A stretch of 44,017 bases of DNA, from NCBI GenBank assembly GCA_002269645.1, contig NIVC01000810.1, positions 174,485 through 218,501 on the forward strand, given 5' to 3'. Source of the stretch: Macrostomum lignano. Its lineage: Eukaryota. Below are positions 10,501-44,017 of the stretch, piece by piece. The notes below the pieces were generated by a model. It did not search any database. It was given only the letters and a program-made list of their open reading frames with translations, and was not told the origin of the DNA. The translations under genes were made by a program, and so were the position numbers. Numbering within the stretch: position 1 is the first letter of the stretch; each line of letters begins with the position of its first letter.

Positions 10501-12501
10501 TTTGCAGCGATTTGGTCTGCGTGTTATCCTCTTCGCGCTTCTTCAGCACTTGAAAATTGTACTCGAGCTTCTCCAGGTTCAGCTGAAACGTAGCCTTCAT
10601 CATCTGCACCTGCTGTTGCAGCCGCTCGACGTCCTGCTCGAGAGTGACCTTTAACTCGTTGAACTCCTCGGCGTGTTGGGTTCGCAGGGCGCTCAGCTGA
10701 TCCTCGAAGTCGTCAACGCGAAGCTGCCTGGCCTGAAGGTACTCGTTCTGCCGGTCCACAATCTGCTTCATCAACGCCTCCCAATCCGACGTCTGTCGCT
10801 CCATCGTGTCCTCCCGCTGTTGAACGAAGGCTTTTTCAATCTGCAGCAGCTCCTGCTTGTAGGCTCGAGTCATGGTTCGCACCTGCTCTTCCATTCGCTC
10901 CACCAGCAGGTCGATTTCTTCCGACTGTTTCTTCAACTCTTTCACGTAGAGCTCGTCTTTGGCTTTGAGCTCGAATAGCAGCTCGTTGATGAGTTTGTTC
11001 TTCTCGTCGATTAGCGAGTCGCAGCCCTCCTGCTGAGCTTGCAGCATCTCGTGCAGATCCTGATAATTTTTTGAGGCATCGCATGCTTAATATCCACTAT
11101 CTGTCTTAGTGCTTGTCTCTGCGTGTGTTTTCGTCTGTGTACCTGCGTCTGCTTGCCTTTCTGTCTGCCTGTCTGTCTGACTGTATGTCTCAGTGTCTCT
11201 GTGACAGAATCCTAGTTTATCTTAGTGTCTGTCTGTCTGTTTGTCTACTCAGCAAGCTCTAAAAATGCCTCTAAATAATCCCTACCTGCGGAATCTCCTT
11301 CTGCAACGCGATCTCCCACTTCTTGGTGATGTCGTCGAACTTCTCGGTGGCGGCCTTGGCCTCGGCCTCCAGCTTCTCTCGTCGCAGTCGACGCGCCTCG
11401 TCATCCTCGATGCGGCGCGCGTTCTCCCTGGCGTCGCCAGCCACGCGGACGTTGGTGAGAAATTCGTTGCCGTCGCGCAGCAGCTTCGTGTTGCGCTGCC
11501 GGCTGGCCTCGATCTGCTTCAGGCTCTTGCTGAGCTCCTCGATCTTCACGCCCTCCTCCTCGTCTGTCCCTTCGGCCCTGGAGATTGTGTTTGGGTTAAC
11601 CATTTAGGCAATTCGATTTAAAATTATTCTTATTTAACTAAAGCTTTACTGTTTCTATTGAAAAACTGTATATTTCTAAAAAAGTTTTGAAGAATTAAAA
11701 CAAACTAATATTTTTAAGTATCGATTTAGATTTCTATGACTTCGTTCTCTGTTATGTAAAATGTAAAAATCCTTGACAATAATTTCTATTTTTTACATCA
11801 GATAGTAGCTCATAGAAAGATAGTCGGGAAATCAAATCTTCTTCTTAATTCTCAATTAAGCAATGTATACTATGCATGCTTTATAAATATCAAAATTATT
11901 AGTAATTTTTAGACAGTCTTTCAATAGCTTTTGAATTCTTTTTTTCACAACATTTAAAACAGTAAAGTTTAAAATAAGCAAAGTCATTTAAGTTAAGAAA
12001 TCAATATGTCTATGAGGTATTAATATGCTCCCACAGAATATTATATGATAGCCAAACTAATATGATTTTGTAGTAGTTAAGTAAAGAAAATAGCTGGGAT
12101 CATTTCATGCTTAACCAAAGATAAATTTCAAAAGCAGGGTTAAAATTACAAGATAGTTATAAATTTTATGCATTATTGAAATGGAAAAATAATTATTTCT
12201 ATTGTTGCATAAGATTTTATGGATACTTGCATAAATAAAATAAGTTGTACTGTAAAGTCTTGCACGAGAGCTGATGAAAATTATATCTGCTTTATGTTTT
12301 CCTATAATTTTAAATTTAAAACGCATTTATGCAGTATGTTTAGTTCAATTCGAATCAAAGGACTGGAGTTCCTTAATCGTACCTTCTTTGTGCTTCAATG
12401 CGTCGTTCGATACGCAGACGTCTTGCTTGAATTCTTTCCTGGATGTCTTCTGATTCAACGGTAGGTTCAGGCTCTTCATCTTTCTCTTGACTGTTCTTCA
12501 T
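7514..12501 (-). CDS. DRC1: Dynein regulatory complex subunit 1 (CCDC164), 724 aa, 6 exons
   Basis: complement join 12501-12383, 11577-11286, 11059-10392, 9923-9179, 8483-8193, 7573-7514 = 2175 nt, all GT-AG and in phase. Recognisable DRC1 motifs: QERIQARRLRI, DEKNKLINEL, EKLEYNFQVLKKR, DIWLMNEEEAK, LVCDEAGFLIE, IHPNRV, LWDALLAGMEKY, VNQELEIPPTQV. Confidence 0.95.
7811..8123. repeat. 45-bp minisatellite, ~7 copies, in the last DRC1 intron
   Basis: Unit CTTCTACTTGAGTAGTCCTTGGCTAAATGCTAAGACGCTAGCGTC recurs at 7861, 7906, 7951, 7996, 8041 and 8086. Confidence 0.95.
8611..9076 (+). repeat. Dispersed ~250-bp repeat, copy A, interrupted by a MITE
   Basis: 8611-8631 plus 8847-9076 is the approximate reverse complement of 23864-24112. 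Confidence 0.85.
8634..8846. mobile_element. MITE-like element, ~213 bp, with ~22-bp imperfect TIRs
   Basis: Left end ACCCGTTGGAAAATAATTGTCC versus right end GGACAATTATTTCTCGCCGGGT (inverted). The segment is absent from the second copy of the host repeat at ~24090. Confidence 0.7.
10070..10345. repeat. Degenerate ~30-bp minisatellite in DRC1 intron 3
   Basis: Recurring GAGGAAGCACACACCTCACCCCTGAGCAT-like units. Confidence 0.85.
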
Positions 12502-13582: not shown

Positions 13583-19572
<5,990 letters not shown>

Positions 19573-20105: not shown

Positions 20106-21007
20106 GTTCAACATCAGATCAATATTTATTAAGCGGCTCAGCAGCTGATCCAATGTTTAATCGGGGCATGGCTACAGCTTCATAAAGGAACTGAAGTTGA
20201 TTGCAATGGAAATAACATCACTATAAGCTAGCATTCACCAGTGCTATTTAAAGCAAATTAATCGATATTGATGGCAGCTATCAACATCAAAGCCGGATAT
20301 TTGCAACCAAGGCCAATTTAAATTGCAAATTTCTCTCTCTATTCATAGATTAGATATCCAACTCAGCGCTTGAACTGGTTCAGTGTAGACCGGCTGGTGA
20401 ATCTGTGAGAAAGCCGGTCAGTTGACCACCGCAAGCGCACACATCCGCTACCAGATTGGCCACTAATTATGCACAAACAGATGGAAGCATGTGTCAGGGG
20501 AAAGCAAATTTGGTTTGAACTCTTATGGTAAACGCGCCATACCTGTTATTGTCGGGTATTTTTAGTAAATTTTGAGCATTTATATATTCTGCCTGAATAA
20601 AAATATCTCAAACGGCATCGTTAGTGCTACTATTGATAAAAATATTAAATTCTAGTTCGTAATGTTTCGACAGCAGCCAGTTTCAGTTTCAGGAATAGTT
20701 TTAATTAGCATAAAAATATCTGAATAACCAATCATAAGCTATTAGTGAAGCAAAAGTCTTAGCCGAAATAATTATAGTTATTACAAAGTTCGGAAGCTTA
20801 AAAAAGTCATTCTCTATAAAAAACAGAAAAGCACAGAGAAATCTTGAGTAAATGAGGGTCTCTCTCGGAGTCTCTCCGTTATTTTTGAAAAATCGGAACT
20901 TGAAGAAGCTGAGCTTTGATGTTGCTACAGAAAAGAGAAAAATCTACAGCACACCTGTTAGTTTCAGAAAAGTTGATCTCCCATGATCGCCTCACGATCC
21001 CCCGGCC

Positions 21008-24000
21008 CTACATATCCCATGACGTCACCAGCTCGCCGTGCTCGTCGATGTGTCCGATGATCTTCTCGTAGATCGTCTCGAGACTGTCCGACAGACGGGG
21101 GGCCGATGGGTCGGGACTGACAACCGTCGCGTACTCCATGCGGGACAGGTCCTGGGGTAAACCGGTTCAGGTAGATGAGGCTTAAATGCATATTAATTAA
21201 CTAATTATTCTCTCTTCCGTCTCTATAAGACCAGCACCAGGGGCTTTAGCACCAGGGGCTTTAGCACCAGGGGCTTTAGCACCAGGGGCTTTAGCACCAG
21301 GGGCTTTAGCACCAGGGGCTTTAGCACCAGGGGCTTTAGCACCAGGGGCTTTAGCACCAGGGGCTTTAGCACCAGGGTCTTTAGCATCAGGGGCGCCAGC
21401 ACTAGGGGCGCCAGCACCAGGGGCTTTAGCACCAGGGGCGCCAGCACCAGGGGCGCCAGCACCAGGGGCGCCAGCACTAGGGGCGCCAGCACCAAGGGCG
21501 CCAGCACCAGGGGCGCCAGCACCAGGGGCGCCAGCACCAGGGGCGCCAGCACCAAGGGGCGCCAGCACTAGGGGCGCCAGCACCAAGGGCGCCAGCACCA
21601 GGGGCGCCAGCACCAGGGGCGCCAGCACCAGGGGCGCCAACACCAGGGGCGCCAGCACCAGGGGCGCCAGCACCAGGGGCGCCAGCACCAGGGGCGCCAG
21701 CACCAGGGGCGCCAGCACCAGGGGCGCCAGCACCAAGCACGCTGACAATGTCATCGGGCGCGCCAGGCGCTGCTTTGCGCAGGTGAGGAGAGCCATCGGG
21801 CCTACTTGGGGTCTTTCTCCCAAGACGGTCAGATGGATTTACACCGGCATTGTTCGGCCCAGTATCACCTACGCGTGTGTTATCTGGTCCAGTGCGTTGG
21901 AGTTGAAGACTGTTTGGGATCGGTTGTACCAGCTGCAGGGTAACATCTGCCGAGCCATCACCGGTGCGTATCCATCCACCCCTTACGAGGGGCTCAACAC
22001 CATCCTCAGCATGCCTCCGCTGCATTTGTTCATTAGAGCTGAGGCGATGAAGGGTGCCGCGCGTCTCATCTGTGATAAATTTATTGCTAACACGCCCTCG
22101 GGCTTCATGCCTGAGAAGACTCTTTTCCCACATCTGGACTATATCCGTCGCGATCTTCAACGCATCCACCTCAATTTAGACGAGGTGGACTGCAGATCAT
22201 CCACTCTCATCCTCAGGAGGGGCTTCAAGTGTACTCTTCCACCGAGAGGTAGTCACCCGCTGGACGTGGGCATCAACCGGAGAAGCCAGGGTATTCACTG
22301 CTTCACTGACGGATCCCTGCGTGACGGTCTCGCTGGTGCAGGCATTGCCATTTTCCACAAGGGTGAAGCGATCTTCCAAGAGAGTCTTCATCTTGGTGAG
22401 AATGTCTCGGTTTTTCAATCCGAAGTTGTAGCTATCAACCAGTGCGCTGAGCATTTGCACAAAGCTGGCATCAGCAGCTTTGACATTTATTTTTACTCTG
22501 ACAGCCAGGCCGCTATTAAGGCCTTGTCTTCTATCAAGCTCTCAACCAAGTCAGTCTCAGACTGCCTCAAAAGCTTGCAGACCCTAGCGATTCTCAACAG
22601 GATCAATGTTATCTGGACACCAGGCCATAGCAACATCCTCGGCAACGAGCTTGTGGATCAGCTTGCCAAGCGGGGTTGCACCCCTGATGGAGCGCAACGC
22701 TCAGTCAAGTTACCTTCTCCGAAGTCATCAATCAACCGCGCCATTCAAGATTGGCTGAACCGCCAGCATCAGACTCACTGGGACAGCTGCTCCGAATACC
22801 GGCAAGCACGAAAGGCTATGCCTGCCATTAACCGGAAAGTATCCGAATATCTAATCTCCTTAAGTAAAACTGACCTGAGGGAGATGTGCATGGTCATTAC
22901 TGGCCATGGCTTCTTCCAGAGACATATTTCACTGCAAAGTGGCTGCTCCCCTATCTGCCCATTCTGTGATTTAGAGGAGGAAACCTCGACGCACCACGTC
23001 ACTTTCTGCCCGCACTTCAACGAGGCGCGGAGGCGTCACCTCGGTCACCCGCTAAGGCTTGACGAGCTCACCACTCCGGACCGTATCCGTGATCTACGTG
23101 CATTCGTTCGGGATTCTGGGCGGATGAAAATCGCAGACGCCACTCTCGCGAGCTCTTCTGCCGGCGAGGGGTGGGCGCAGCCCCAAGGCTAACGCCTTTC
23201 TGTTTCTGTTTAGCTTGGGGTTGCGATGGGGGCCTCGCGGCCTGTTCGCGGCGCTCTGCCCCCCGTCGGTAGTAAGTAAGTAAGTAGGGGCGCCAGCACC
23301 AGGGGCGCCAGCACCAGGGGCGCCAGCACCAGGGGCGCCAGCACATCAAAAATGAGATACCAATTATGGAATGCAACCAAGCTACCCACCCTGTACAGGT
23401 AGTGCGATTTCCTGTAGTCCTGCTCCAGCTCGAGGGCCGACGGTCCCGCACCGATGCGCTTTCGGTAAAAGTAAATCGATAACGCAACTACTAGAAGCAG
23501 CAACGACAGCAGGCCGAACAGAACTGGTAGAAAACTGCTTTCTTCGTCCCGCTTCCCTTTGTTGCATCTTGTGACTCCTGAAATTCGAATAATTGCTACT
23601 CGAATGTCCATATCTGTTGATCTGCATATGTCAACAGGGAGACATAAGCGGCCTTACCTGCTGATTGCAAAGATGAACAGCTCCGCTTTATCGTGAAATT
23701 AATGATTTTCCTCTGTGTAATCAAACAAGAAATTGTTATATTTTCTTGATAGCTGTCAGTCTTGCCAGTCAGAACTGCTGCATCTTCCAACGAGTCATTA
23801 AAAAACGGCTGAAGATGGTTTTTTAAAATTGGTTTCATGCAGTCATGCCATTTTTTATTGAGGCTGGCACGCTTTAAGCGACAATGTCGCACAACCGGCG
23901 AGAGGCATTGCTGCCCATTCCGCCGACTCCCCTGAGCAGGCACACAAGCGCGCGGATACGTACGCAGTCATACGCACAGGCACACACTCACACAGGAGTG

Positions 24001-27000
24001 TACAGCGGCCCTAACTTTATTTATCGTTAGGCATGCACACTTCACTGTGCCTTGGGGGTTGGCCCTCAAGGCCGTTAATTGCACGAGCAGAGCCAAGCCG
24101 AGATTTCAATTTCGCCGCACTGAACCTGTGGGCTACGCCCCCCCCCCCTGGGAAATGTCATGCTTCAGAGCTACTCACAGAGCCAGTAGAGTTCCCATCG
24201 ATGAAGCACTGAGCGCTGGCTCTGGGATTTCCTCTCCATTCCTTCGACAGGCTAAGCGTGGTGTTAAAATGGGTTCCGTTGAAGAAAGAGATCGACAAAC
24301 TTGCTTCTGCTTGGTCTGAGGGGAATTTTTAAAAAAATTCTTGGCGATTATCAAGTCTCCATTACAGTCACGAAAAACTATTCACAAAGGTAGTTGAGTA
24401 ATTAGTCAATATAGGAATGCCTTCATTGGATTCTTATGGGGAACGAATAATAAGCAGAAGCGCTGCCCGACCGCCCGAGGACTCGGCTGCGTCAGTCGGT
24501 GATCGAGACCGTCATGCTGTACAACGCCTAGACGTGAACCCTGACCGCTACGCTGAAGGGGCAGCTGGACTCGGCGCACTCGGGGCTGCTCTGAGTGGTC
24601 TTACGAGCCGACGAGAGCTTCGGGCTCAACTGCAACGCCCGTCCACCTTCCTTGAGCCGGCGGCGACGTCAACTAGCGAACCAAGTGATTCGGGTCGAGA
24701 GCTACTGCCCCCCAGCCTCTACAGAGACGCCCTCATGACTTGACTCTTCTAGGTTTCGTCTTTTGTTGTTCTTACTTGAAGTATTATACGAACTAGTAAC
24801 CCTTTGGTGCTAAAGCTCACGCTGTTAAATCTAATATGCAATGAGTTATCACAATTAACAACTTTAACCAAAGTTTTGCCAACTCACAATAGACAGTAAT
24901 GTTCTGTGTGAATCTGCCATCCACATCTTCGAGGTCATGCTGAGAGACTCTGCACTCCAATGAGCCTCCGTTCATCTGCCTTGTTGAACTCCAGCTAAAT
25001 TCAGATTCCATCAGCGTCTCAACTCCTGGAGTTTGAGTCACGGGGGTGTTCTGAGCCCTGGTCATGCTGGTGCTGAGACCATCGGCTCTTTGCAGCCAGC
25101 ACCGGTGACTGGGCTCAGGGTTGCCACCGACTGACCGAACTGAGACTGACACGGGCTCGCCCTCCTTCATCACCAGAGGCTGAGTTGCATTCCATGAGTT
25201 CCTTGACGCATCTGTTGTACAAATCAATTCATTTGAATAGCGTTCCATTCACTCAGAATCATAACAATGGGAAACAAAAACGACTCAAACTCACAGAGCA
25301 CATCGAGTTTGTCACTGACTACTGACTTGCGAAACAAAACTGTGCTGCTTTCAGTCATCTGCAAAAGATCACACTGGATTTGCTGTCCGTTGTCTCCGGC
25401 CAGAGCGTTCAGTGTCCATAGAGATGTAGCATTTGATGCAGATTGAGGCTGGAATCAGTTTAGGGAACGAGGTTATTGTCATGTATCACCTGTCAGTCAA
25501 ATACTACAAACTACAGCCTTACCATAATCTGTGTGAGATTCCTTCCGGAAGCAGAGCAGCTGTGCAGAGCCGGAGGATTGCCGCGGTCAGAGGCCAGCAG
25601 CAGAATTTGAGCTGGGGAATTCGCTCGGATCTGCGGTGCGGCCAGCCTGATGGAGGCGCTCCGCACGGGGTCTGCGGTGTTTGCATATGCAGTTGGCTAT
25701 TGTGTACAAATTGTGTACCAACTGAAAAAACTATATATGTGAAGCCACATGCTGTTGCAAATAATGATAGTCAGCTATCCATCACGTGACTCACACAGAG
25801 CAGCTGGCAGCGGATGCCGGGCCCAGGTCTCGATCAGTCCCGACTGATTCACCAGACACGCAACGGATGCGCTGCTGCCCCACCGTCTGCTCACAGTTAC
25901 TGAGAATGTGCTGCTCGAGTTTGTGCTCTGGAATGAGTTCATTTCACACCATGCTTTCTGCAGGTCTCGGCGGCAAAACTGTAAAATACTCACCGAGACA
26001 ATCCGCAGTGTCGAGTTCGGGACTCCCTCCGACAGCAGAAAGCAGCTATGACTGGTTGTCACCCAGTTTCCTTGAGATGAGTCAGCTGTCAGATTGACAG
26101 TCGCTCCATCTATCCAGCTGGAGTCTGGGGGAAGCAGAAACCGAGTGCTGCAGGCCTCTGAAACGGTTCGAGTCGGGAGTGCTAAGGCGATTGCTGCCGT
26201 GAGAACCAGCAGTGAGAACTCACCGAGTAGCTTAGGCAGGCGCAGTGTTACTGGTGCTATATTTGTGCTGTCACTGCATTTTATGCTGCAAGATATGTTT
26301 CCATTCTTATATTCTGATTGCAGTTTCACCTCAAAGTACGACTTTGCACCGATATTTCTAGTACTGAACTTTTGTGTTTCACTCTAAAAGCATGCATGAA
26401 AGTTCACAAAAAATGTGAATGCGCACGATATTGAGTCGAAAATACAGCGCTTTTATTCTTACACTGAAAGTCGAATTCAGTCTTTTTATTGAGATCGTTT
26501 TCGACTTTTTTCGGCTTGATGTACTGCCATAATTTCTCGGATCATATGTAAGATAGCAGTCGTACTCTGTTGCAGAAACCAAGCCATCCGTGCTGAGAGA
26601 GAACACTGCTGTCCTGTTCACCACCCAGTGCTTGGTGATGCTCAGATCAAGACTTGGAGCTCCTGAAATTCAAGCTGAAAGCTTAGAAAAAGAAAAAAGA
26701 AATGGTGACTTCTATTTCACGTTAAAGTTGGTAAATGACCAACTGGAAATGAGAAGGATTGATGATACATTTCTACATAATCGGCAGTTCATTTATTGAA
26801 AGATACAGCGCGAGAAAAACATGAGATACTGAAACTTATTTACTCAATCACAGCTTCACCGAAATTGCCATTAAGTAATGTTACAATGGCGAAGCAGGTG
26901 TTTGGAAACCGTCTCGAAACTCTTTCAAGCTCACCCTTTGCTACACATTGGTTTATCATCAGTTCTTGCGAAGTCTGCGCGAGACTTCCGTCAGTGCAGC

Positions 27001-29580
27001 TCTGTCGGCACTGCAGATTCGCTTCGTGAAATTCCGGTGTCACGTTAATCTCTTTCAAAATGAGGAAACTGGAAGTTTTTGCCTTCTGCAAAATTTATCG
27101 GATTCAAGTTGTAAGTTAGTAGCTAATGAATTTCAGCATTTTGTTTCCAGTTCAGCTCTCACACTGCTCAGAGCCATGACGTCACCGCTTCGCATCCGGA
27201 TGCTGCAGTTGACTGCACCAGGTGCGGATGATGAGCTGCACGGAAGCCATGCCTTAACCATCAGTTTATCATTTTCCTTCAGTTTCAACAATTCTCTCTC
27301 AAAACATCCAACGTTGCTTTGTTTGCAAAAGTACGCTCCGTAGCAGTGAGCATTTTTGGCGTCTCGATCAGAATCATTGCTTCTTTTAATAGCCAAGCTA
27401 TTTTCCTCGATCTGCAGCAGCCGGAAGTTCATGTACTTGTCAGCATTGTTGTGCACAAACTTCCTCAGCAGCACAAACTGCGGCAACTGTAATGAGATGT
27501 CAATGAGGACATTAAAACATGCACGGGAGCTCCAATATTGAAGGACTCAGCAATTGCATACCTTTGAATAGTCTCGAACTGAGCAGGTAACTTTATATGC
27601 TAATTCTGAGTTAGTTGAGTTCTCGGTGATTCCACACAGGTGAAATTCGGTCAGGCTGTGGTTGAAACCCGCTATGCAACCTGGCGGATTCTCAGTCAGA
27701 CCAGCTGGCCTCTCGTGGCTGAGCAGCACCTCGATGCCCAGGGCTCTAACTCTTTCTGGGACTGGGGCTGGTTTGATAATGTGCAAGGAAAACTGTGAAC
27801 TGATTATTATCAAACATTCTTATGCACAAAAACACAGTGTGCACAAACACACGGTGTGCACAAACACACGGTGTGCACAAACACACGGTGTGCACAAACA
27901 CACGGTGTGCACAAACACGCGGTGTGCAAAAACACACGGTGTGCACAAACACACGGTGTGCACAAACACACGGTGTGCTCAAACACACGGTGTGCACAAA
28001 CACACAGTATGCACAAACACACGGTATGCACAAACACACAGTATGCACAAACACACAGTATGCACAAACACACGGTGTGCACAAACACACGGTGTGCACA
28101 AACACACGGTGTGCACAAACACACAGTATGCACAAACACACGGTGTGCACAAACACACGGTGTGCACAAACACACGGTGTGCACAAACACACGGTGTGCA
28201 CAAACACACGGTGTGCACAAACACACGGTGTGCACAAACACACGGTGTGCACAAACACACGGTGTGCACAAACACACAGTATGCACAAACACACGGTGTG
28301 CACAAACACGCGGTGTACACAAACACACGGTGTGCACAAACACACGGTGTACACAAATACACGGTGTGCACAAACACACAGTATGCACAAACACACGGTA
28401 CGCACAAACTTTGGCAGTACTCTTTAGCGAACTTTAGCTAACACAAACCGATGCAAAATATCCTAATACTTACAATCAAGTCTCCCATAGACAGTGACCG
28501 AGAGCACTGAGACACACCGGTTGAGCTTCAGCAACAGCCACTGGTAGCCTGAGGGGTCCGCGGTGTTGCTGGAGTGGAAATAGTCCCATTGCGATGGTCT
28601 GGCAGATGAATTACGGAAGCAGCCGTTGCTGTTGTACCATGACGACTGCCAGGCATCATCGATTTCGGATTTGGTGATGTTGAAGCCGAGGCCTTCAGTG
28701 TTAATAAAGTTTTAGCGACTTGAAAACTGTCTGACCAAAGCTTTTTGTAAAGTGGCGTAGTATCTTCAGATTTTTATCAATAATTCAATGCCCATCGTTT
28801 GCTTTCCAAAGAAGCGCTTATTATTTAACTCTCAAGCATTTATACATCTAGATTACTACTTAAACGGGTAATCTATCTTAATCTGAGCGAGCATCATTGT
28901 AGTTACTAGCACTATTTCATTGAACTTCAAGTTGGTGCTCTTTTGGAGTCTGTAAAAGACGCAATGTTCCAGTAGCCGAACACTCAATCATGATAGTCTT
29001 AATTGTATGAGACTTGTTTTTGTAATTTAGAAGATTACTAGATTTCTAATGACATTTGACATTCACATTTTTTTAACATGCATGATATGATAATTTACAG
29101 TTTCTTTTGGTTTATGTAGCTTGTAGCTTGAACTTCCACCACTCTAACACTCTTGACATGAGTATGAAGTTCCATGTGAGTTAAAGTTGCAATAAGAACT
29201 ACCACTGATAAAGTGACGCTTTATCAAGGTGTAACATTCACATCCTATTAATTCTATAAAGCCATTGTAAGATAAGACCGTTCTCAACTCCCATCTCCGC
29301 AGTGTAAAAGTTCCGACATAAGATCGAACTTACGCTACGAAAGCTTTATACGCTCGTAGTACGACCCCCTACTCTTAGCGTAGCAAGTTTCAACAGTGGG
29401 TTTGAAACTGTGCCGGTAATTGAACTGTCAAATAAATGGTTATTACATTATTTCCTATCAAGATGCCATTGCGCAATAATTATGATATAATTATACAATA
29501 TCAGAAATAAAACAATTTTCCTCACAGTCTCTGAAGCAATAGACAGCAAAGCACAAAAACAGCTTCAATTGCAGATCCAT
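21008..29580 (-). CDS. Type I membrane receptor, ~983 aa: signal peptide, F-type-lectin-like domain, six atypical Ig-like domains, TM, ITIM-like/ITSM cytoplasmic tail
   Basis: complement join 29580-29526, 28692-28474, 27761-27562, 27486-27163, 27085-26860, 26662-26463, 26383-26224, 26181-25994, 25927-25795, 25671-25523, 25448-25295, 25211-24888, 24315-24179, 23808-23658, 23577-23390, 21151-21008 = 2952 nt. All introns are GT-AG and phases chain without a stop. Signal [21 protein letters not shown]; lectin motifs [25 protein letters not shown]-x3-R; Ig-like GNP..C and NG...C motifs, with LDVLY and ITVYY G-strands; [25 protein letters not shown] then RKR. The exon 3 acceptor could shift by 6 nt either way. 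Confidence 0.75.
21231..21735. repeat. 15-bp minisatellite, left part (AGCACCAGGGGCTTT block, then AGCACCAGGGGCGCC block)
   Basis: Tandem units in the last intron of the receptor; the array resumes at 23286-23344 after the LINE. Confidence 0.97.
21736..23286 (+). mobile_element. 5'-truncated non-LTR retrotransposon (R1/LOA-like) encoding RT C-terminus, RNase H and CCHC knuckle; (TAAG)3 tail
   Basis: Uninterrupted frame 21738-23192: [34 protein letters not shown]; RNase H motifs [36 protein letters not shown]; C-x2-C-x8-H-x4-C (CPFC...HHVTFC). 3' UTR ends in TAAG repeats at 23273-23284. Clade assignment is from motif memory. Confidence 0.9.
23286..23344. repeat. 15-bp minisatellite, right remnant (4 units)
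   Basis: AGGGGCGCCAGCACC x4 directly after the LINE tail. Confidence 0.95.
23864..24112 (-). repeat. Dispersed ~250-bp repeat, copy B (uninterrupted), in receptor intron 13
   Basis: Approximate reverse complement of 8611-8631 plus 8847-9076. Confidence 0.85.
24457..24760 (+). mobile_element. Decayed RTE-like LINE 3' fragment, receptor intron 12
   Basis: One frame reads [36 protein letters not shown]...[12 protein letters not shown], matching the RT C-terminal 'S.VETVLLY..E.WTLT..L...LD....LLR' pattern with in-frame stops. Confidence 0.65.
27827..28409. repeat. 17-bp satellite (CACAAACACACGGTGTG), ~34 copies, receptor intron 2
   Basis: Tandem units; reverse complement of the array starting at 34561. 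Confidence 0.98.
28411..28820 (-). repeat. Left arm of an inverted segmental duplication (partner 34150-34559)
   Basis: Line-by-line comparison gives ~410 bp of unique sequence with one mismatch; paired coordinates sum to 62970. Confidence 0.95.
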
Positions 29581-30377
29581 GTAGACGCTGAGGGTGTCTA
29601 CAGTTTTGCAAAATACGATTGCGGAACAGAAGAGGCCCTCTGTCTGCTGCGATTATCAAGATTAAGCTTCGAAGGAAGCTTAGATGGTACAATATTGTGA
29701 AATTTAACCATCAATACGGCTCAACGAGTGAAATAGCTACACTCGTAATATGGGTAGAAATTACCCTACATCCAACCGTCCAATTCACCTTTAGCCAATA
29801 GGCAATGGACCTGGGGCTTTATGTACGTGTAAATATAATTATTGTCCATTTAGCCACGGACTGCTATATGCTAAAACCTGGGCTAAAACCTTCTTTTGAG
29901 GCTTACAGATTTAGGTCCAGCATTTGCCACAGTGGTAGATATTCCAACACGGCATTGATAAGGCAAAAAAATCGTTTGTAAAGAATTACTACCTAAATTA
30001 CTTAATATAATGATGCATATTTAGGACACTCGTTATTAATATTTTATCAATGGCTTGGTCGTAGTTATATAAATTCAACAACAGAATAAAAAAATTGATG
30101 TAATTTACTTAAAATACGAAATTATTGAACGCAAAAATTTCATTTTTTTCTAGATTTCACGACTTTTCCTGAGATTTATAGACACGAGGACATCAAACGC
30201 ACACGTAGCTACGAGTGTCTGCTTTCCTTAGTTTGATTCGTATGACCGAATCACTACAAGCTCGTATGACCATCACGAGTTATACGAGCAAATTCTCGCA
30301 AAGCTCCGTGAAATTTTTTTCAACTAAACTTGTTAAATTTTCCGAAAATCGAAAAATTTAACTAGCTACATAGCCTT

Positions 30378-32498
30378 CACTCAGCAACACTGAAAAGTTT
30401 CCACCCTCGCGCCAGCCGTGTTTATTTAGAGTTTCAAAACTAGTTTTTGTCGCCAGACTTGTGCCATAGACGATTGATGATTTCGTCAACACGCACTTCG
30501 GCCATAGACAAAAACTTGGGTCATAGACGCCAGACAGGACAGGTCGAAGGAAACAGTCACATGGAGCAGACCCATGCTGCGATCCCGTAAGATGCGCAAA
30601 CGGCCACGCCTGACCCCAACCCATGTGGCCAGCCGGGAACAATGGATAAATAATCAACACTATTGACCGCGACCGCTGATTCTTTGCATTGTTTTTCTGT
30701 TTGACGATCCTAAAAACAATGCATTGTTTGTAGCAATGGATTGTTCTGCATTAAAAATGGGAATAATGATGTCAAATTGCTAAACAATGGGAAATGCAAA
30801 GGGCAGCAGCAGTGGCGGCGAGTGATTTTTATTGATTGTAGAGAGTTATTAGACAATACCGAAATGCTCTACTTAAAGTAATATTCTAAGGAAGTCAATT
30901 TCTTTCAAAATGAGTCATATCTATTTTAGGAATCACGCGCAAACAGAATGATTTAGAAACCTACATTGTTTGATCAAGGAACCGGATTCCAACAGCTGTA
31001 TTTGCTTAACCCCATATATGGTAATGCTCAAACATGCATGACAGCTTAATCAAACATTTTTGACCTAAGTAAATACCCAATCCCAAACCGGTTTTTCTCC
31101 AAAATTTTGCTATAAATATAAGTGAAATTTGAGTCAAAAATTCAGACTCAGAGCGGTCTCTAAAAAGACTCTGAAGAAACAAGAAGACCAATCTCTGAGG
31201 GACCACACCTGTCCAATTGGTAAGCGTTTACCCGATTTAGTTATTTGTTACTAGCGCTAATAAGTTGGTTAATTGAGTTATACGAGAGCAGTTCATTGTC
31301 GATACATTAGAGAAAGGCCTCCTTGTTTCCTAGGATATTCCTAGAGGATTTATTGATTTAATTGAGTTATCCGTTACGTTTCGGACGTAACGAAGAAGCC
31401 GCCCTTCAGGAGGACCTATCACAGAAAATTAGAGAATTCAATTGTTCATTAGGGCGCACGTTCTATTGTTAATTCCGAGCTCGAGGACCGTTAAGAAGTT
31501 CTGATTCGCTCTCGTTTGGTCGACCCACAGATAAAAGTCAAGGACTCAAGAAGAATACTCCAAATCGGCCGTCACTACTGCTCAGCCAAGTTAGACAGAG
31601 TCACACACACCGCAAGAACCAGAAGTCTACCAACCACAAGAGGATCCGCCGCAGTAAGTCATTTGAACTGGTAAATACCTAGGCACTTGTTCCCCAGTGT
31701 CTAGAAGTGGGAGTTTTTGAGTGACTGATCACCACTCTTAAACTCTTCATGATGAGAGCCGCTTTCGATTGTTCCGTGCCGACGGCCGCATTCGCGTGTG
31801 GCGCCAGCCGCACCAGGAGATGCTGCCGCAGCACGTGCAAAACTCTGAGAGCCAGTCAGCTTCTATTCACGTGTGGGCAGGCATCACAATGCACGCGAAG
31901 ACGGAGCTCGTGTTCCTGGATGCGATTGTGACTGCCGAGTCGTACGCCAACCTTCTACAGACGCGCCTGCTGCCTTTCATTGATGCTTCATGTGGTGGCG
32001 TGGGGAACAGCGTCCTCCAAGACGACAACGCCCCACCGCATCGCGCAGCCGCTGTGGCGCATCTGAAGGAGCTGCTGCACCTGCGATCCTTGCGCTGGCC
32101 ATCCCGATCACCGGACATGAATCCCAGGGAGCACGTTTGGGATTACCTGAAGCGCTCGATTCGGCGCGACAATCCGCCGCAAAACGTTGCCCAACTGCGC
32201 GAATCACTGTCTACTGCATGGCAACAACTCTGCGACGCCTGTTTCTGGGGATGCCCCGGAGAGTGAGCGCTCTGCTGCATGCACGTGGCTGCTATACGCG
32301 TTACTGACCCTGTTCTGGGCAAGTTGTCACCCATGCTCGCGTACTTTGTTTCTGTGCTGTTCCTTTGCTTCGTTCGAATCCGGATTATATATTTGTCTAT
32401 GGCTCAAACCATGAATATCTGCACCCACCAAAACGTTGACCCTTCGCAACGTTGACCCTTCGCACGCTAGGGTGGAAACTTTTCAATGTTGCTGAGTG
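30378..32498 (+). mobile_element. Decayed Tc1-family DNA transposon (DD34E) with 30-bp TIRs and an internal ~1.1-kb insertion
   Basis: TIRs CACTCAGCAACACTGAAAAGTTTCCACCCT (30378-30407) and AGGGTGGAAACTTTTCAATGTTGCTGAGTG (32469-32498), one mismatch; TA follows the right TIR. Linker fragment MLRSRKMRKRPRLTPTHVASREQW at 30574-30645; catalytic region from 31751. Confidence 0.9.
31751..32307 (+). pseudogene. Tc1 transposase DDE domain, frameshifted
   Basis: DESRF...VWAGI...QDDNAPPH...WPSRSPDMNPREHVW, with 34 residues between the second D and E. Frameshift near 32230 before MPRRVSALLHARGCYTRY*. Confidence 0.9.
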
Positions 32499-33768: not shown

Positions 33769-34496
33769 ATGAGTCTCCAGAAAAAACAGATTCTGTACGT
33801 CAGCTGCAGTCTCTGCTGCTTTTACGTTTGTAAGTACCGTTTTTTAGCTTTTATCTTGCACAACTTCGTTTAAAAATTATTGTAGGCTACTTGACTTTAA
33901 TATAATGAGCAATAACATTAGCGTCTTGAAGGCCAAACTGTGACTCAAGGGGACTGGATATGAGTTAGTAGCACAGAAATCGAATTCAATACCTTTGAAC
34001 TGTCACTGTTGCTTAAAAGGTTGCTTAAAAGATTAGAGTAGCCAAAGTTTAGCGTGATCAGGCGGGTTGTACATATTTTTCATCCTTGTACATTGGGCGA
34101 GTGATCCACTAGGTCATTTGATGTCGTTGTATGCGAGCATTGTATACCTTAAGCGCTTCTTTGGAAAGCAAACGATGGGCATTGAATTATTGATAAAAAT
34201 CTGAAGATACTACGCCACTTTACAAAAAGCTTTGGTCAGACAGTTTTCAAGTCGCTAAAACTTTATTAACACTGAAGGCCTCGGCTTCAACATCACCAAA
34301 TCCGAAATCGATGATGCCTGGCAGTCGTCATGGTACAACAGCAACGGCTGCTTCCGTAATTCATCTGCCAGACCATCGCAATGGGACTATTTCCACTCCA
34401 GCAACACCGCGGACCCCTCAGGCTACCAGTGGCTGTTGCTGAAGCTCAACCGGTGTGTCTCAGTGCTCTCGGTCACTGTCTATGGGAGACTTGATT
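33769..34496 (+). CDS. 5' part (exons 1-2) of a second, divergently oriented copy of the lectin-Ig receptor; remainder would lie beyond the satellite, outside the window
   Basis: join(33769..33829,34278..34496). Exon 1 is MSLQKKQILYVSCSLCCFYV plus a phase-1 gtaagt donor, giving ...CFYVCLGFNITK. Exon 2 is identical to 28692-28474. Confidence 0.6.
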
Positions 34497-34559
34497 GTAA
34501 GTATTAGGATATTTTGCATCGGTTTGTGTTAGCTAAAGTTCGCTAAAGAGTACTGCTAA
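34150..34559 (+). repeat. Right arm of the inverted segmental duplication
   Basis: Reverse complement of 28411-28820 with one mismatch; the order of variant units also matches for the first several satellite units. Confidence 0.95.
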
Positions 34560-34560
34560 A

Positions 34561-37500
34561 GTTTGTGCGTACCGTGTGTTTGTGCATACTGTGTGTTTGT
34601 GCACACCGTGTGTTTGTGTACACCGTGTGTTTGTGCACACCGTGTGTTTGTGTACACCGCGTGTTTGTGCACACCGTGTGTTTGTGCATACTGTGTGTTT
34701 GTGCACACCGTGTGTTTGTGCACACCGTGTGTTTGTACACACCGTGTGTTTGTGCATACCGTGTGTTTGTGCACACCGTGTGTTTGTGCACACCGTGTGT
34801 TTGTGCACACCGTGTGTTTGTGCACACCGCGTGTTTGTGCACACCGCGTGTTTGTGCACACCGCGTGTTTGTGCACACCGTGTGTTTGTGCACACCGCGT
34901 GTTTGTGCACACCGTGTGTTTGTGCATACCGTGTGTTTGTGCACACCGTGTGTTTGTGCACACCGCGTGTTTGTGCACACCGTGTGTTTGTGCACACCGT
35001 GTGTTTGTGCACACCGCGTGTTTGTGCACACCGTGTGTTTGTGCATACCGTGTGTTTTTGCACACCGTGTGTTTGTGCACACCGCGTGTTTGTGCACACC
35101 GTGTGTTTGTGCACACCGTGTTTTTGTGCACACCGTGTGTTTGTGCATACCGTGTGTTTGTGCACACCGTGTGTTTGAGCACACCGTGTGTTTGTGCATA
35201 CCGTGTGTTTGTGCACACCGCGTGTTTGTGCACACCGTGTGTTTGTGCATACCGTGTGTTTGTGCACACCGTGTATTTGTGCACACCGTGTGTTTGTGCA
35301 TACCGTGTGTTTGTGCACACCGTGTGTTTGTGCACACCATGTGTTTGTGCACACCGTGTGTTTGTGCATACCGTGTGTTTGTGCATACCGTGTGTTTGTG
35401 CACACCGCGTGTTTGTGCACACCGTGTGTTTGTGCATACCGTGTGTTTGTGCATACCGTTTGTTTGTGCACACCGCGTGTTTGTGCATACCGTGTGTTTG
35501 TGCAAACCGTGTGTTTGTGCACACCGTGTGTTTGTGCATACCGTGTGTTTGTGCATACCGTGTGTTTGTGCACACCGTGTGTTTGTGCATACCGTGTGTT
35601 TGTGCACACCGTGTGTTTGTGCACACCGTGTGTTTGTGCACACCGCGTGTTTGTGCATACCGTGTGTTTGTGCATACCGTGTGTTTGTGCACACCGTGTG
35701 TTTGTGCACACCGTGTGTTTGTGCATACCGTGTGTTTGTACATACCGTGTGTTTGTGCACACCGTGTGTTTGTGCATACCGTGTGTTTGTGCACACCGTG
35801 TGTTTGTGCATACCGTGTGTTTGTGCACACCGTGTGTTTGTGCACACCGTGTGTTTGTGCACACCGTGTGTTTGTGCACACCGTGTGTTTGTGCACACCG
35901 TGTGTTTGTACATACCGTGTGTTTGTGCACACCGTGTGTTTGTGCACACCGCGTGTTTGTGCACACCGTGTGTTTGTGCATACCGTGTGTTTGTGCACAC
36001 CGCGTGTTTGTGCACACCGTGTGTTTGTGCACACCGTGTGTTTGAGCACACCGTGTGTTTGTGCATACCGTGTGTTTGTGCAAACCGTGTGTTTGAGCAC
36101 ACCGTGTGTTTGTGCATACCGTGTGTTTGTGCACACCGTGTGTTTTTGCATACCGTGTGTTTGTGCATACCGTGCGTTTGTACACACCGTGTGTTTGTGC
36201 ATACCGTTTGTTTGTGCACACCGTGTGTTTGTGCACACCGCGTGTTTGTGCACACAGTGTGTTTGTGCACACCATGTGTTTGTCCATACCGTGTGTTTGT
36301 GCACACCGTGTGTTTGTGCACACCGTGTGTTTGTGCATACCGTGTGTTTGTGCACACCGCGTGTTTGTGCATACCGCGTGTTTGTGCACACCGTGTGTTT
36401 GTGCACACCGTGTGTTTGAGCACACCGTGTGTTTGTACATACCGTGTGTTTGTGCACACGTGTGTTTGTGCACACCGCGTGTTTGTGCACACCGTGTGTT
36501 TGTGCATACCGTGTGTTTGTGCACACCGCGTGTTTGTGCACACCGTGTGTTTGAGCACACCGTGTGTTTGAGCACACCGTGTGTTTGTGCATACCGTGTG
36601 TTTGTGCAAACCGTGTGTTTGAGCACACTGTGTGTTTGTGCATACCGTGTGTTTGTGCACACCGTGTGTTTTGCATACCGTGTGTTTGTGCATACCGTGC
36701 GTTTGTACACACCGTGTGTTTGTGCATACCGTGTGTTTGTGCACACCGTGTGTTTGTGCACACCGCGTGTTTGTGCACACCGTGTGTTTGTGCACACCAT
36801 GTGTTTGTCCATACCGTGTGTTTGTGCACACCGTGTGTTTGTGCACACCGCGTGTTTGTGCATACCGTTTGTTTGTGCACACCGTGTGTTTGTGCACACC
36901 GTGTGTTTGAGCACACCGTGTGTTTGTGCACACCGTTTGTTTGTGCATACCGTGTGTTTGTGCATACCGTGTGTTTGTGCACACCGTGTGTTTGTGCATA
37001 CCGTGTGTTTGTGCATACCGTGTGTTTGTGCATACCGTGTCTTTGTGCATACCGTTTGTTTGTGCATACCGTGTGTTTGTACACACCGTGTGTTTGTGCA
37101 TACCGTTTGTTTGTGCACACCGTGTGTTTGTGCACACCGCGTGTTTGTGCACACCGTGTGTTTGTGCACACCGTGTGTTTGTGCATACCGTGTGTTTGTG
37201 CACACCGTGTGTTTGAGCACACCGTGTGTTCGTGCATACCGTGTGTTTGTGCACACCGTGTGTTTGTGCACACCGCGTGTTTCTGCACACCGTGTGTTTG
37301 TACACACCATGTGTTTGTGCATACCGTTTGTTTGTACACACCGTGTGTTTGTGCATACCGTTTGTTTGTGCACACCGTGTGTTTGTGCACAACGCGTGTT
37401 TGTGCACACCGTGTGTTTGTGCACACCATGTGTTTGTGCATACCGTTTGTTTGTGCACACCGTGTGTTTGTGCACACCGTGTGTTTGTGCATACCGTGTA

Positions 37501-40500
37501 TTTGTGCACACCGCGTGTTTGTGCATACCGCGTGTTTGTGCACACCGCGTGTTTGTGCATACCGTGTGTTTGTGCATACCGCGTGTTTGTGCACACCGTG
37601 TGTTTGTGCATACCGTGTGTTTGTGCACACCGTGTGTTTGTGCACACCATGTGTTTGTGCACACCGTGTGTTTGTGCATACCGTGTGTTTGTGCATACCG
37701 TGTGTTTGTGCATACCGTGTGTTTGTGCATACCGTGTGTTTGAGCACACCGTGTGTTTGTGCACACCGTGTGTTTGTGCATACCGTGTGTTTGTGCACAC
37801 CGCGTGTTTGTGCACACTGTGTGTTTTTGCATACCGTGTGTTTGTGCACACCGCGTGTTTGTGCACACCGTGTGTTTGAGCACACCGTGTGTTTGTGCAT
37901 ACCGTGTGTTTGTGCACACCGTGTGTTTGTGCACACCGTGTGTTTGTGCATACCGTGTGTTTGTGCATACCGTGTGTTTGTGCCTACCGTGTATTTGTGC
38001 AAACCGTGTGTTTGAGCACACCGTGTGTTTGTGCATACCGTGTGTTTGTGCATACCGTGTGTTTGTGCATACCGTGTGTTTGTGCACACCGTGTGTTTGT
38101 GCACACCGTGTGTTTGTGCATACCGTGTGTTTGTGCATACCGTGTGTTTGTGCACACCGCGTGTTTGTGCACACCGTGTGTTTGTGCATACCGTGTGTTT
38201 GTGCATACCGTTTGTTTGTGCACACCGCGTGTTTGTGCATACCGTGTGTTTGTGCAAACCGTGTGTTTGTGCACACCGTGTGTTTGTGCATACCGTGTGT
38301 TTGTGCATACCGTGTTTTTGTGCACACCGTGTGTTTGTGCATACCGTGTGTTTGTGCACACCGTGTGTTTGTGCACACCGTGTGTTTGTGCATACCGTGT
38401 GTTTGTGCACACCGTGTGTTTGTGCATACCGTGTGTTTGTGCATACCGTGTGTTTGTGCACACCGTGTGTTTGTGCACACCGTGTGTTTGTGCATACCGT
38501 GTTTTTGTGCATACCGTGTGTTCGTGCATACCGTTTGTTTGTGCATACCGTGCGTTTGTACACACCGTGTGTTTGTGCATACCGTTTGTTTGTGCACACC
38601 GTGTGTTTGTGCACACCGCGTGTTTGTGCACACCGTGTGTTTGTGCACACCATGTGTTTGTGCACACCGCGTGTTTGTGCACACCGTGTGTTTGTGCACA
38701 CCATGTGTTTGTCCATACCGTGTGTTTGTGCACACCGTGTGTTTGAGCACACCGTGTGTTTGTGCATACCGTTTGTTTGTGCAAACCGTGTGTTTGAGCA
38801 CACCGTGTGTTCGTGCATACCGTGTGTTTGTGCACACCGTGTGTTTGTGCACACCGCGTGTTTGTGCACACCGTGTGTTTGTACACACCATGTGTTTGTG
38901 CATACCGTTTGTTTGTGCACACCGTGTGTTTGTGCACACCGTGTGTTTGTGCATACCGTTTGTTTGTGCACACCGTGTGTTTGTGCACACCGTGTGTTTG
39001 AGCACACCGTGTGTTTGTGCACACCGTGTGTTTGAGCACACCGTGTGTTTGTGCACACCGCGTTTTTGTGCACACCGTGTGTTTGTGCACACCGTGTGTT
39101 TGAGCACACCGTGTGTTTGTGCATACCGTGTGTTTGTGCAAACCGTGTGTTTGAGCACACTGTGTGTTTGTGCATACCGTGTGTTTGTGCACACCGTGTG
39201 TTTGTGCATACCGTGTGTTTGTGCATACCGTGTGTTTGTGCACACCGTGTGTTTGTGCACACCGTGTGTTTGTGCATACCGTGTTTTTGTGCATACCGTG
39301 TGTTTGTGCACACCGTGTGTTTGTACATACCGTGTGTTTGTGCACACCGTGTGTTTGTGCACACCGCGTGTTTGTGCACACCGTGTGTTTGTGCATACCG
39401 TGTGTTTGTGCACACCGCGTGTTTGTGCACACCGTGTGTTTGTGCACACCGTGTGTTTGAGCACACCGTGTGTTTGTGCATACCGTGTATTTGTGCAAAC
39501 CGTGTGTTTGAGCACACCGTGTGTTTGTGCATACCGTGTGTTTGTGCATACCGTGTGTTTGTGCACACCGTGTGTTTGTCCACACCGTGTGTTTGTGCAC
39601 ACCGTGTGTTTGTGCATACCGTGTGTTTGTGCATACCGTGTGTTTGTGCACACCGCGTGTTTGTGCACACCGTGTGTTTGTGCATACCGTGTGTTTGTGC
39701 ATACCGTTGTTTGTGCACACCGTGTGTTGTGCATACCGTGTGTTTGTGCAACCGTGTGTTTGTGCACACCGTGTGTTTTGCATACCGTGTGTTTGTGCAT
39801 ACCGTGTTTTGTGCACACCGTGTGTTTGTGCATACCGTGTGTTTGTGCACACCGTGTGTTTGTGCACACCGTGTGTTTGTGCATACCGTGTGTTTGTGCA
39901 CACCGTGTGTTTGTGCATACCGTGTGTTTGTGCATACCGTGTGTTTGTGCACACCGTGTGTTTGTGCACACCGTGTGTTTGTGCATACCGTGTTTTGTGC
40001 ATACCGTGTGTTTGTGCATACCGTTTGTTTGTGCATACCGTGCGTTTGTACACACCGTGTGTTTGTGCATACCGTTCGTTTGTGCACACCGTGTGTTTGT
40101 GCACACCGCGTGTTTGTGCACACCGTGTGTTTGTGCACACCATGTGTTTGTGCACACCGCGTGTTTGTGCACACCGTGTGTTTGTGCACACCGTGTGTTT
40201 GTGCACACCGCGTGTTTGTGCACACCGTGTGTTTGAGCACACCGTGTGTTCGTGCATACCGTGTGTTTGTGCACACCGTGTGTTTGTGCACACCGCGTGT
40301 TTGTGCACACCGTGTGTTTGTGCACACCATGTGTTTGTGCATACCGTTGTTTGTGCACACCGTGTGTTTGTGCACACCGTGTGTTTGTGCATACCGTTGT
40401 TTGTGCACACCGTGTGTTTGTGCACACCGTGTGTTTGTGCACACCGTGTGTTTGTGCACACCGTGTGTTTGTGCACACCGTGTGTTTGTGCACACCGTGT

Positions 40501-43500: not shown

Positions 43501-44017
43501 GTTTGTACACACCGTGTGTTTGTGCATACCGTTGTTTGTGCACACCGTGTGTTTGTGCACACCGCGTGTTTGTGCACACCACACCGTGTGTGTTGTGCAC
43601 ACGTGTGTTTGTGCACACCGGTGTTTGTGCACACCGTGTGTTTGTGCACACCTGTGTTTGTCATACCGTGTGTTTGTGCACACCGTGTGTTTGTGCACAC
43701 CGTGTGTTTGTGCATACCGTGTGTTTGTGCAACCGTGTGTTTGTGCACACCGTGTGTTTGTGCATACCGTGTGTTTGTGCACACGCGTGTGTTTGTGCAC
43801 ACCGCGTGTTTGTGCACACCGTGTGTTTGTCACACCGTGTGTTTGTGCATACCGTGTGTTTGTGCACACCGTGTGTTTGTGCACACCGTGTGTTTGTGCA
43901 TACCGTGTGTTTGTGCACACCGTGTGTTTGTGCACACCGTGTGTTTGTGCACACCGTGTGTTTGTGCACACCGTTGTTTGTGCATACCGTGTGTTTGTGC
44001 ATACCGTGTGTTTGTGC
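34561..44017. repeat. 17-bp satellite (CACACCGTGTGTTTGTG), >9.4 kb, ~550 copies, runs off the window
   Basis: Tandem units with CATACC, GAGCAC, GTACAC and CGCGTG variants; unit-shortening indels become frequent after about 39700. Confidence 0.99.

Follow-up and report, generated by a model that had tools for sequence, protein, structure and literature searches.

A Macrostomum lignano gene for a predicted membrane receptor with a remotely F-type-lectin-like head, an immunoglobulin-like stalk and a paired-tyrosine tail

Siglecs such as CD22 and the CD33-related members carry a distal glycan-binding head on a stalk of C2-type immunoglobulin (Ig) domains, followed by one transmembrane helix and a tail in which an immunoreceptor tyrosine-based inhibitory motif (ITIM) and a distal T-x-Y-x-x-(V/I) motif lie about 20 residues apart. 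PECAM-1 and PD-1 carry a tandem of an ITIM and an immunoreceptor tyrosine-based switch motif (ITSM) with about 23-25 residues between the tyrosines. Here, we analyze a gene of the flatworm Macrostomum lignano whose product very probably has the architecture of a receptor, with a head, an Ig stalk, a transmembrane helix and a tail with paired Tyr motifs. The gene lies on the minus strand of a 44,017-nucleotide stretch of contig NIVC01000810.1 (assembly GCA_002269645.1, positions 174,485 to 218,501). This whole stretch is called the window in the following, and positions are counted from its first letter.

Known F-type lectins are mostly secreted and often have tandem lectin domains. The partners listed in reviews are C-type lectin, H-type lectin, pentraxin, complement control protein (CCP) and FA58C domains as well as transmembrane segments, and neither Ig domains nor ITIMs are among them (F-type lectin reviews, including PMC5712786). 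The fucose motif of these lectins is H-X24-R-X-D-X4-(R/K), and the calcium motif is h2DGx (PMC5712786). Drosophila Furrowed and CG9095 resemble the receptor as membrane-anchored mosaics in which a stalk of repeats carries an F-type lectin domain at its outer end. Their stalk, however, combines CCP (sushi) repeats and a C-type lectin domain and has no Ig, and no ITIM/ITSM tail is described for them in the reviews. Mollusc fibrinogen-related proteins (FREPs) also combine Ig-superfamily modules with a lectin-type domain; unlike the receptor, they are secreted, and the lectin domain is of the fibrinogen type and located at the C-terminus. To our knowledge, the Alr proteins of Hydractinia and the fester proteins of Botryllus have no lectin head. 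Parts of the allorecognition literature discuss ITIM motifs in these lineage-restricted Ig-superfamily genes. An exhaustive search of 1.84 billion proteins with hidden Markov models (HMM) gave no sequence homology of FREPs, Alr or fester to the receptor family. ITIM-bearing invertebrate Ig receptors and Ig-plus-lectin proteins are already known, and what is new here is the combination of modules in a lineage-restricted, expanded family.

The minus strand from 20,900 to 29,700 was translated in three frames to rebuild the receptor model; all candidate junctions were read, and the exons were assembled by script (Table 1). The gene has 16 exons, with the ATG at 29580 and the stop codon at 21008-21010. 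A GT donor and an AG acceptor are present at every junction, the phases are compatible, and there is no internal stop. The coding sequence of 2964 nt (987 codons plus the stop) gives a type I membrane protein of 987 amino acids with 24 N-glycosylation sequons. As read from the genome, the region is an intact gene for a predicted type I membrane glycoprotein. A preliminary description of this DNA, made by a model from the letters and a list of their open reading frames (ORFs), had proposed a phase-consistent model of 16 exons. Our independent rebuild arrived at the same ATG and stop coordinates, and the peptide strings quoted there are all present in exons 2-4.

Paralogous M. lignano proteins (labeled with P numbers) align with exons 2-15 (tblastn or blastp), and two paralogues have C-termini that align with the peptide of exon 16. 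Hence, the chain of exons is far beyond chance. Exon 1 is without a paralogue match because it is short; it was assigned by its hydrophobic leader and its phase fit to exon 2. The NCBI gene model PAA49974.1 (P0017, 804 amino acids, about 11 exons, locus L001) has the same order of signal peptide, head, Ig modules, transmembrane helix and the tail motifs VVYAQV...TEYTEI. The P0002 model unites the head with Ig modules, and the P0001 model unites Ig modules with the transmembrane helix and juxtamembrane region. Read-through at the exon 15 donor was considered as well and rejected, as it enters a minisatellite and leads to a low-complexity peptide.

At the start of exon 3, three in-phase AG acceptors are found within 18 nt, namely at 27767 (..LDSPVPERV..), 27761 (..LDFPERV..) and 27749 (..LDFRALG). 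The first two are 6 nt apart, and both are plausible; the preliminary description used 27761, and our rebuilt model uses 27767. A further acceptor at 27792 was rejected, as it breaks the reading frame. The P0017 intron matches the exon 3 intron in place and phase, but the length of the loop differs. The choice of the acceptor falls in the loop that matches the sugar-binding R-x-D...R segment of F-type lectins. As the acceptors change the length of this loop, alternative splicing at exon 3 could alter the putative binding site.

The head comprises about 165 amino acids and is supported, by profile comparison and modeling, as a very divergent, remote relative of the F-type lectin domain with a galactose-binding-like jelly roll. 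A head profile was built by aligning the heads of divergent paralogues and the exon translations of this gene. Against 177,635 distinct PDB sequences, this profile had only two matches, each of them an F-type lectin: striped bass FBP32 (3cqo), with E 2.4e-7 over both lectin domains (individually E 0.55 and 0.012), and eel agglutinin (AAA, 1k12), with E 0.23. The register is identical in all three alignments of the head with a lectin domain. The family WQSS corresponds to (T)QSS of the lectins, GYQWLL.KL to PWWR.DL, SVTV.GR to SVT.TNR and R-A-x-G-I-E to R-I-x-G-A-E, and the family Cys corresponds to C108 of 1k12; QSS, W..(V/L).L, V.V..R and R..G.E are thus in register. The head is about 25 residues longer than F-type lectin domains. 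When 13 family members were scanned singly, three of them gave weak F5_F8_type_C matches (best E 0.0035, below the gathering score). On these alignments, the tie of the head to F-type lectins is one of apparent remote homology and not of curated membership.

A search of the PDB sequences with the single head sequence gave chance matches only. In exon 3 (about 27575-27601), AYKVTCSVR is identical over nine residues to the phage MS2 coat protein, which we regard as a coincidence, as nothing else aligns. An identity of the head as discoidin (FA58C) or SUN domain was rejected because neither had a sequence match in the PDB profile search.

The AlphaFold model of the P0008 head alone, computed with a diverse alignment, has a predicted local distance difference test score (pLDDT) of 76 and a predicted template modeling score (pTM) of 0.78. 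It replaced a two-domain P0008 model of low confidence (pLDDT 62), for which the Foldseek matches mix Ig pairs with jelly rolls. With the head-only model, every top Foldseek match in the PDB is a galactose-binding-like jelly roll. SUN domains rank first, and 1k12 is found at rank 4 with 17% identity, which is joint-highest in the top 50. Further matches are 3cqo, lectinolysin (3lek/3lei), the pneumococcal fucose-binding SpX modules (2j1r/2j22), CBM32, discoidin, muskelin and XRCC1. The model thus supports the predicted fold class of the head, and the sequence points specifically to F-type lectins.

The residues of a putative sugar site can be followed through the alignments with 1k12. The head of this gene has R-L-D with a His 30 residues upstream. 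The preliminary description had noted a non-canonical spacing of His and Arg, and this holds: H-x30-R-x-D is followed by x3 or x5 to the next Arg, depending on the acceptor of exon 3. The family His (Y-F-H) pairs with H47 of 1k12 and not with the sugar-binding H52; in the H52 column, this gene has Ala. The Arg of G-R pairs with R79 of 1k12 and the Arg of R-A-L-G-I-E with R86, and both are kept in most paralogues. By exon 3 acceptor, 5 or 7 residues separate the Asp from the R86-aligned Arg, and 3 or 5 separate it from the next Arg. The Arg-to-Arg distance is 8 or 10 in this gene, again by acceptor, 6 in most paralogues and 7 in 1k12. A remodeled basic pocket in the head is a possible arrangement.

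The stalk contains units of about 100 residues with phase-1 introns at their borders, namely exons 6-7, 8-9, 10-11, 12 and 13-14. The comparisons support five homologous Ig-like modules (M1-M5) and the weakly Ig-like M0, about six in all. An alignment of M2-M5 with the copies in paralogues shows two invariant Cys residues and the segments G-N-P-x-P and C-x-V-x-Q. Their profile gave 15 matches against the PDB, all with an Ig fold; the best is the C2 domain of nectin-4 (E 7.5e-4), followed by titin I-set, SYG-2, SIRP-alpha and the poliovirus receptor. In the Pfam scan of the full protein, the sole match is a weak C2-set_2 on M4 (E 0.029, amino acids 701-768). M1 matches the stalk-module profile with an hhalign probability of 85% (E 6.5e-6). 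The M0 and M1 profiles had no matches against the PDB, and M0 against the stalk profile was non-significant. M0 is beta-rich in the low-confidence two-domain model and contributed to the fold matches with Ig pairs. It is called Ig-like from this low-confidence model alone, because the sequence comparisons gave nothing significant. As an oddity of the stalk modules, the first conserved Cys is located at the usual position of the C-strand Trp.

One hydrophobic segment (amino acids 890-915) is followed by a tail of 72 amino acids with MEYATV (Y947) and TIYEKI (Y968), 21 residues apart. TIYEKI is a canonical ITSM (TxYxx[VI]), and a canonical ITSM is present in this gene, P0017 and P0024. The P0017 tail combines VVYAQV, a strict ITIM, with TEYTEI, and the P0024 tail combines the ITIM-like CSYLSV with TVYLEI. 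In the alignment of the three tails, both Tyr residues, V at +3, S at -5, T at -2 and I at +3 are invariant. The common pattern is hydrophobic-x-Y-x-x-V, followed by T-x-Y-x-x-I 21-27 residues on. In 100,000 composition-preserving shuffles per tail, such a pair of motifs arises in 0.03-0.3% of the shuffles. The conservation of the tail motifs in paralogues supports exon 16 as a true coding exon despite the 2.2-kb intron 15.

The full protein found three matches in a word-indexed search of 5.8 billion proteins, all of them M. lignano models named "Ig-like domain-containing protein." With a profile of head plus M0, nine more proteins were found, all from M. lignano, and a third word-indexed homologue search added only five more Macrostomum fragments. 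When 1.84 billion representative proteins were searched exhaustively with HMMER, the head profile had 17 matches at E ≤ 0.001. The source was checked for 16 of these 17 relatives; all are from M. lignano and uncharacterised ("hypothetical protein" or automatic names unrelated to the content). As far as HMMER can see, the receptors appear to form a multigene family restricted to Macrostomum. None of the database models is identical to the product of this gene, a copy that carries no annotation in the collections covered by the searches. The literature search found no description of the family, of the gene identifiers of the paralogues, of an F-type lectin with Ig or ITIM, or of ITIM in Macrostomum.

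The best paralogue differs between the modules: it is P0008 for the head (66%), P0001 for M2 and M3 (85-94%) and P0002 for M4 (87%), the head of P0002 being just 54% identical. This mosaic similarity suggests exon shuffling or gene conversion, or else chimeric models in the older assembly. P0020 appears to contain the last part of a head domain and, after it, another head, and heads may thus occur in tandem. The short member P0024 combines signal peptide, head, transmembrane helix and ITSM tail and has no Ig stalk. Hence, head and tail stay associated even where the stalk is missing.

In its layout, the receptor is like a Siglec, and CD22 d1-d3 is among the two-domain fold matches. However, the Siglec head is a V-set Ig domain which binds sialic acid via a conserved Arg, whereas the head of the receptor is a jelly roll. 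The lectin part is therefore non-homologous, and the receptor is not a Siglec; the resemblance is one of design only and not of family membership. With PECAM-1 and PD-1, the receptor shares the pair of ITIM-like motif and ITSM, and PECAM-1 also has six Ig modules. Unlike the receptor, they have no lectin-like head, homology is undetectable beyond the short motifs, and the proximal motif of the receptor has Met at -2.

The preliminary description had proposed a Siglec-analogous receptor with an F-type-lectin-like head, an Ig stalk and an inhibitory tail. Its Ig stalk is supported, as the stalk profile matches Ig-fold proteins only. For the head, the remote relationship stands through the profile matches to FBP32 and eel agglutinin and the jelly-roll model, but there is no Pfam match, and the canonical motifs for fucose and calcium are not those of the head. 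The HMM scan suggested there gave the weak C2-set_2 on M4 and nothing for the head. In the tail, the canonical ITSM and the conserved Tyr pair bear the description out, but the proximal motif is not a strict ITIM. The layout and logic of a Siglec apply, but family membership does not. The tentative view there that this architecture may be undescribed agrees with the reviews of F-type lectins and with the uncharacterised state of all relatives whose source was checked. The sugar binding, the inhibitory signaling and the part in self/non-self or gamete recognition proposed there are candidate functions. On the whole, the exon chain of the preliminary description is confirmed, and its interpretation is supported in part.

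The best explanation, to which we assign a probability of about one half, is that a lectin-like head on an Ig stalk binds a ligand, upon which the tail Tyr residues recruit SH2 (Src homology 2) proteins. The head, held off the membrane by the Ig stalk, would bind an extracellular ligand. This ligand would most likely be a glycan because most paralogues retain the Arg residues that align with R79 and R86 of eel agglutinin, and the specificity would probably be unlike canonical fucose binding. Engagement of the ligand would lead to phosphorylation of the two tail Tyr residues. The phosphorylated tail may then recruit a tandem-SH2 phosphatase or an SH2 adaptor, which would dampen or modulate the response of the cell by the logic of Siglecs, PECAM-1 and PD-1. 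A sugar ligand is favored because the head sequence matches lectins exclusively, and SH2 recognition is favored because T at -2 is conserved and the spacing is like that of ITIM-ITSM pairs; neither argument is decisive. The specific combination of a lectin with an inhibitory function, as read from the sequence, is tentative and falls somewhat short of likely. An even wider proposal is that Macrostomum independently evolved multigene, glycan-sensing checkpoint receptors with an F-type-lectin-derived head, an Ig stalk and ITIM/ITSM, a protostome counterpart of the Siglecs, and this we regard as unlikely. The mosaic similarity of the paralogues gives a hint of shuffled exons or gene conversion, of the kind known from immune receptor clusters of vertebrates.

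Several points weigh against ligand sensing by a lectin-like head with SH2 recruitment. The gene model of this copy is a prediction from genomic sequence. The head structure was modeled on the paralogue P0008, which is 66% identical to the head of this gene, and the Pfam scan of the head of this gene gave no match even at E ≤ 10. The Foldseek TM-scores of the P0008 head are modest (0.4-0.5), with peptide-binding SUN domains slightly above the lectins. Hence, the fold alone does not imply sugar binding, and the F-type fold is inseparable from SUN, discoidin and CBM32 by structure alone. In the HMMER alignment to 1k12 and in the paralogue alignment, the head does not have the canonical fucose motif. 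The candidate His is replaced with Leu in P0002, P0003, P0005 and P0006, with Gln in P0020 and with Ala in P0022, and P0020, P0022 and P0023 have Ser in place of the first Arg. The calcium motif h2DGx is absent, as AIDGN of FBP32 corresponds to ..CF.. in the family, and the vicinal Cys-Cys pair is also absent, with no CC dipeptide after R-x-D in any family member. In the tail, MEYATV departs from the strict ITIM ([SIVL]xYxx[IVL]), although at position -2 only, where Met is found instead of S/I/V/L. Both Tyr motifs also fit the Yxx-hydrophobic endocytic signal.

Some of these points would suit an Ig-superfamily adhesion or guidance molecule, an alternative that we consider doubtful. Its jelly-roll head would bind protein or matrix, like the discoidin domains of DDR1 and neuropilin or like SUN domains, and the tail Tyr residues would serve docking or sorting and not inhibition. 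The fold class is common to protein-binding domains, with SUN2, DDR1, muskelin and XRCC1 among the best structural matches, and the best Ig match, nectin-4, is an adhesion molecule; the missing sugar and calcium motifs and the variation of the candidate site residues among paralogues point the same way. However, the head sequence matches F-type lectins only and none of the many discoidin, CBM32 and SUN entries in the PDB, and the R79- and R86-aligned residues are kept in most paralogues. T at -2 of the distal Tyr, which is invariant in three divergent tails, is a position that matters to SH2 binding but not to adhesion. An endocytic or phagocytic lectin receptor appears improbable. In this case, the head would capture glycosylated cargo or microbes, and YATV and YEKI would drive adaptor-mediated internalization instead of phosphatase recruitment. 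In its favor, the head is lectin-like, both motifs fit Yxx-hydrophobic, and the proximal motif departs from the strict ITIM both here and in P0024. However, the spacing of 21-27 residues and the conserved S..T.Y..I context are typical of ITIM/ITSM pairs and needless for adaptor binding, and P0017 carries the strict ITIM VVYAQV.

It is very improbable that the exons do not form one functional gene, be it a recent pseudogene or exons of several transcripts joined in a repeat-rich, possibly misassembled region. No annotated protein matches exactly, a retroelement fragment and a minisatellite interrupt intron 15, a nearly identical inverted copy of exon 2 is found 5.5 kb upstream, and the acceptor of exon 3 is ambiguous. 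Against this, each of the 16 exons is open, keeps the phase and has GT/AG at its borders, P0017 shows the same overall architecture in one annotated gene, and the exon 16 peptide is homologous to the tails of paralogues.

Table 1 Coordinates in the window of the receptor exons and the neighboring genes. M0-M5 are the modules of the stalk
Feature	Position	Strand	Content and comparison
Exon 1	29526..29580	-	ATG and signal peptide; ends in phase 1, donor GTGAGG
Exon 2	28474..28692	-	First part of head (AWQSS...YFHSS...GYQWLLLKL...VTVYGRLD); P0002 and P0003 align; QSS, W..L and GR align to 3cqo and 1k12
Exon 3	27562..27767	-	Middle of head (RALGIEV...C...LCG...YKVTC); P0017 intron (locus L001) at same position and in same phase 1
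Exon 4	27163..27486	-	End of head, Cys-rich linker, first half of M0; second beta-rich domain after head in paralogue model
Exon 5	26860..27085	-	Second half of M0; Ig-like beta sandwich, weakly supported (two-domain Foldseek matches to Ig pairs)
Exon 6	26463..26662	-	First half of Ig-like M1, starts in phase 1; M1 profile matches stalk profile over the G.P.P.H.C segment
Exon 7	26224..26383	-	Second half of Ig-like M1
Exon 8	25994..26157	-	First half of Ig-like M2; 85% identity to P0001
Exon 9	25795..25957	-	Second half of Ig-like M2
Exon 10	25523..25671	-	First half of Ig-like M3; 94% identity to P0001
Exon 11	25295..25448	-	Second half of Ig-like M3
Exon 12	24888..25211	-	Whole Ig-like M4 (...LECRVSQ), single phase 1-1 exon; 87% identity to P0002
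Exon 13	24179..24315	-	First half of Ig-like M5
Exon 14	23658..23808	-	Second half of Ig-like M5
Exon 15	23390..23577	-	Membrane-proximal stalk, transmembrane helix, juxtamembrane region; LELEQD..SHYLY common to P0001
Exon 16	21008..21151	-	Cytoplasmic tail with ITIM-like MEYATV (Y947) and ITSM TIYEKI (Y968), stop
Dynein-regulatory-complex-like gene	8142-11603	-	Pfam NYD-SP28 'sperm tail' and NYD-SP28_assoc
Bestrophin chloride channel gene	13583-18497	+	CTAT microsatellite at 15201-15566 within the span of the ORFs

The window is rich in repeats. A segment covering exon 2, 128 bp of intron 1 and the beginning of intron 2 (28410-28820) recurs in inverted form at 34150-34560, with 410 of 411 bases identical; exon 1 is not repeated upstream of this second copy. 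Either part of the gene underwent an inverted duplication very recently, or the assembly contains a foldback artefact here. The second copy is followed at 34561-44017 by a minisatellite with a 17-mer unit (GTTTGTGCACACCGTGT), which has about 558 copies and extends past the end of the window. The same unit, GTTTGTGCACACCGTGT, forms an array of 34 copies on the other strand in intron 2 of the receptor gene (27823-28409). Between the receptor gene and the inverted exon 2 copy, a DDE_3 transposase fragment (Pfam E 5e-11) is located on the plus strand at 31769-32266 and is probably Tc1/mariner-like.

In intron 15 (21231-23340), a 15-mer array (CCAGCACCAGGGGCG, about 34 copies) and a short array remnant flank an ORF of 469 codons on the plus strand (21783-23192), which contains an RNase H domain (Pfam E 6e-11). 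By its sequence, the ORF looks like a 5'-truncated non-LTR (long terminal repeat) retroelement inserted into the 15-mer array. A 228-bp inverted repeat pair with 92% identity is located in intron 13 (23864-24091) and near the NYD-SP28-like gene (8849-9076), and this is probably a dispersed repeat element. Further outside the receptor gene, a 23-mer satellite (AGTGATGGTCAGGAGAGGTTCGG) at 1636-4559 has about 127 copies and a strong GC skew, and a long CTAT microsatellite (15201-15566) lies within the region that the bestrophin ORFs cover. Because spliced eukaryotic genes are present, the idea that the window is bacterial or viral in origin was rejected.

If the proposed function is true, the family would represent convergent evolution of the Siglec design, with lectin head, Ig stalk and inhibitory Tyr tail, from a different lectin fold and in a protostome. 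Glycan-based inhibitory sensing would then appear to be something that arises readily in animals and not a vertebrate specialty. Apart from the function, the family widens the reach of F-type lectin domains, and because it falls below the Pfam thresholds, such domains may be under-counted in genome surveys. M. lignano is a tractable organism, in which RNA interference, in situ hybridization, transgenesis and assays of regeneration and mating are in use. Even with a non-sugar ligand, the family would comprise lineage-restricted, expanded surface receptors with a conserved signaling tail and would be a good candidate for a role in flatworm immunity, self-recognition or reproductive interactions.

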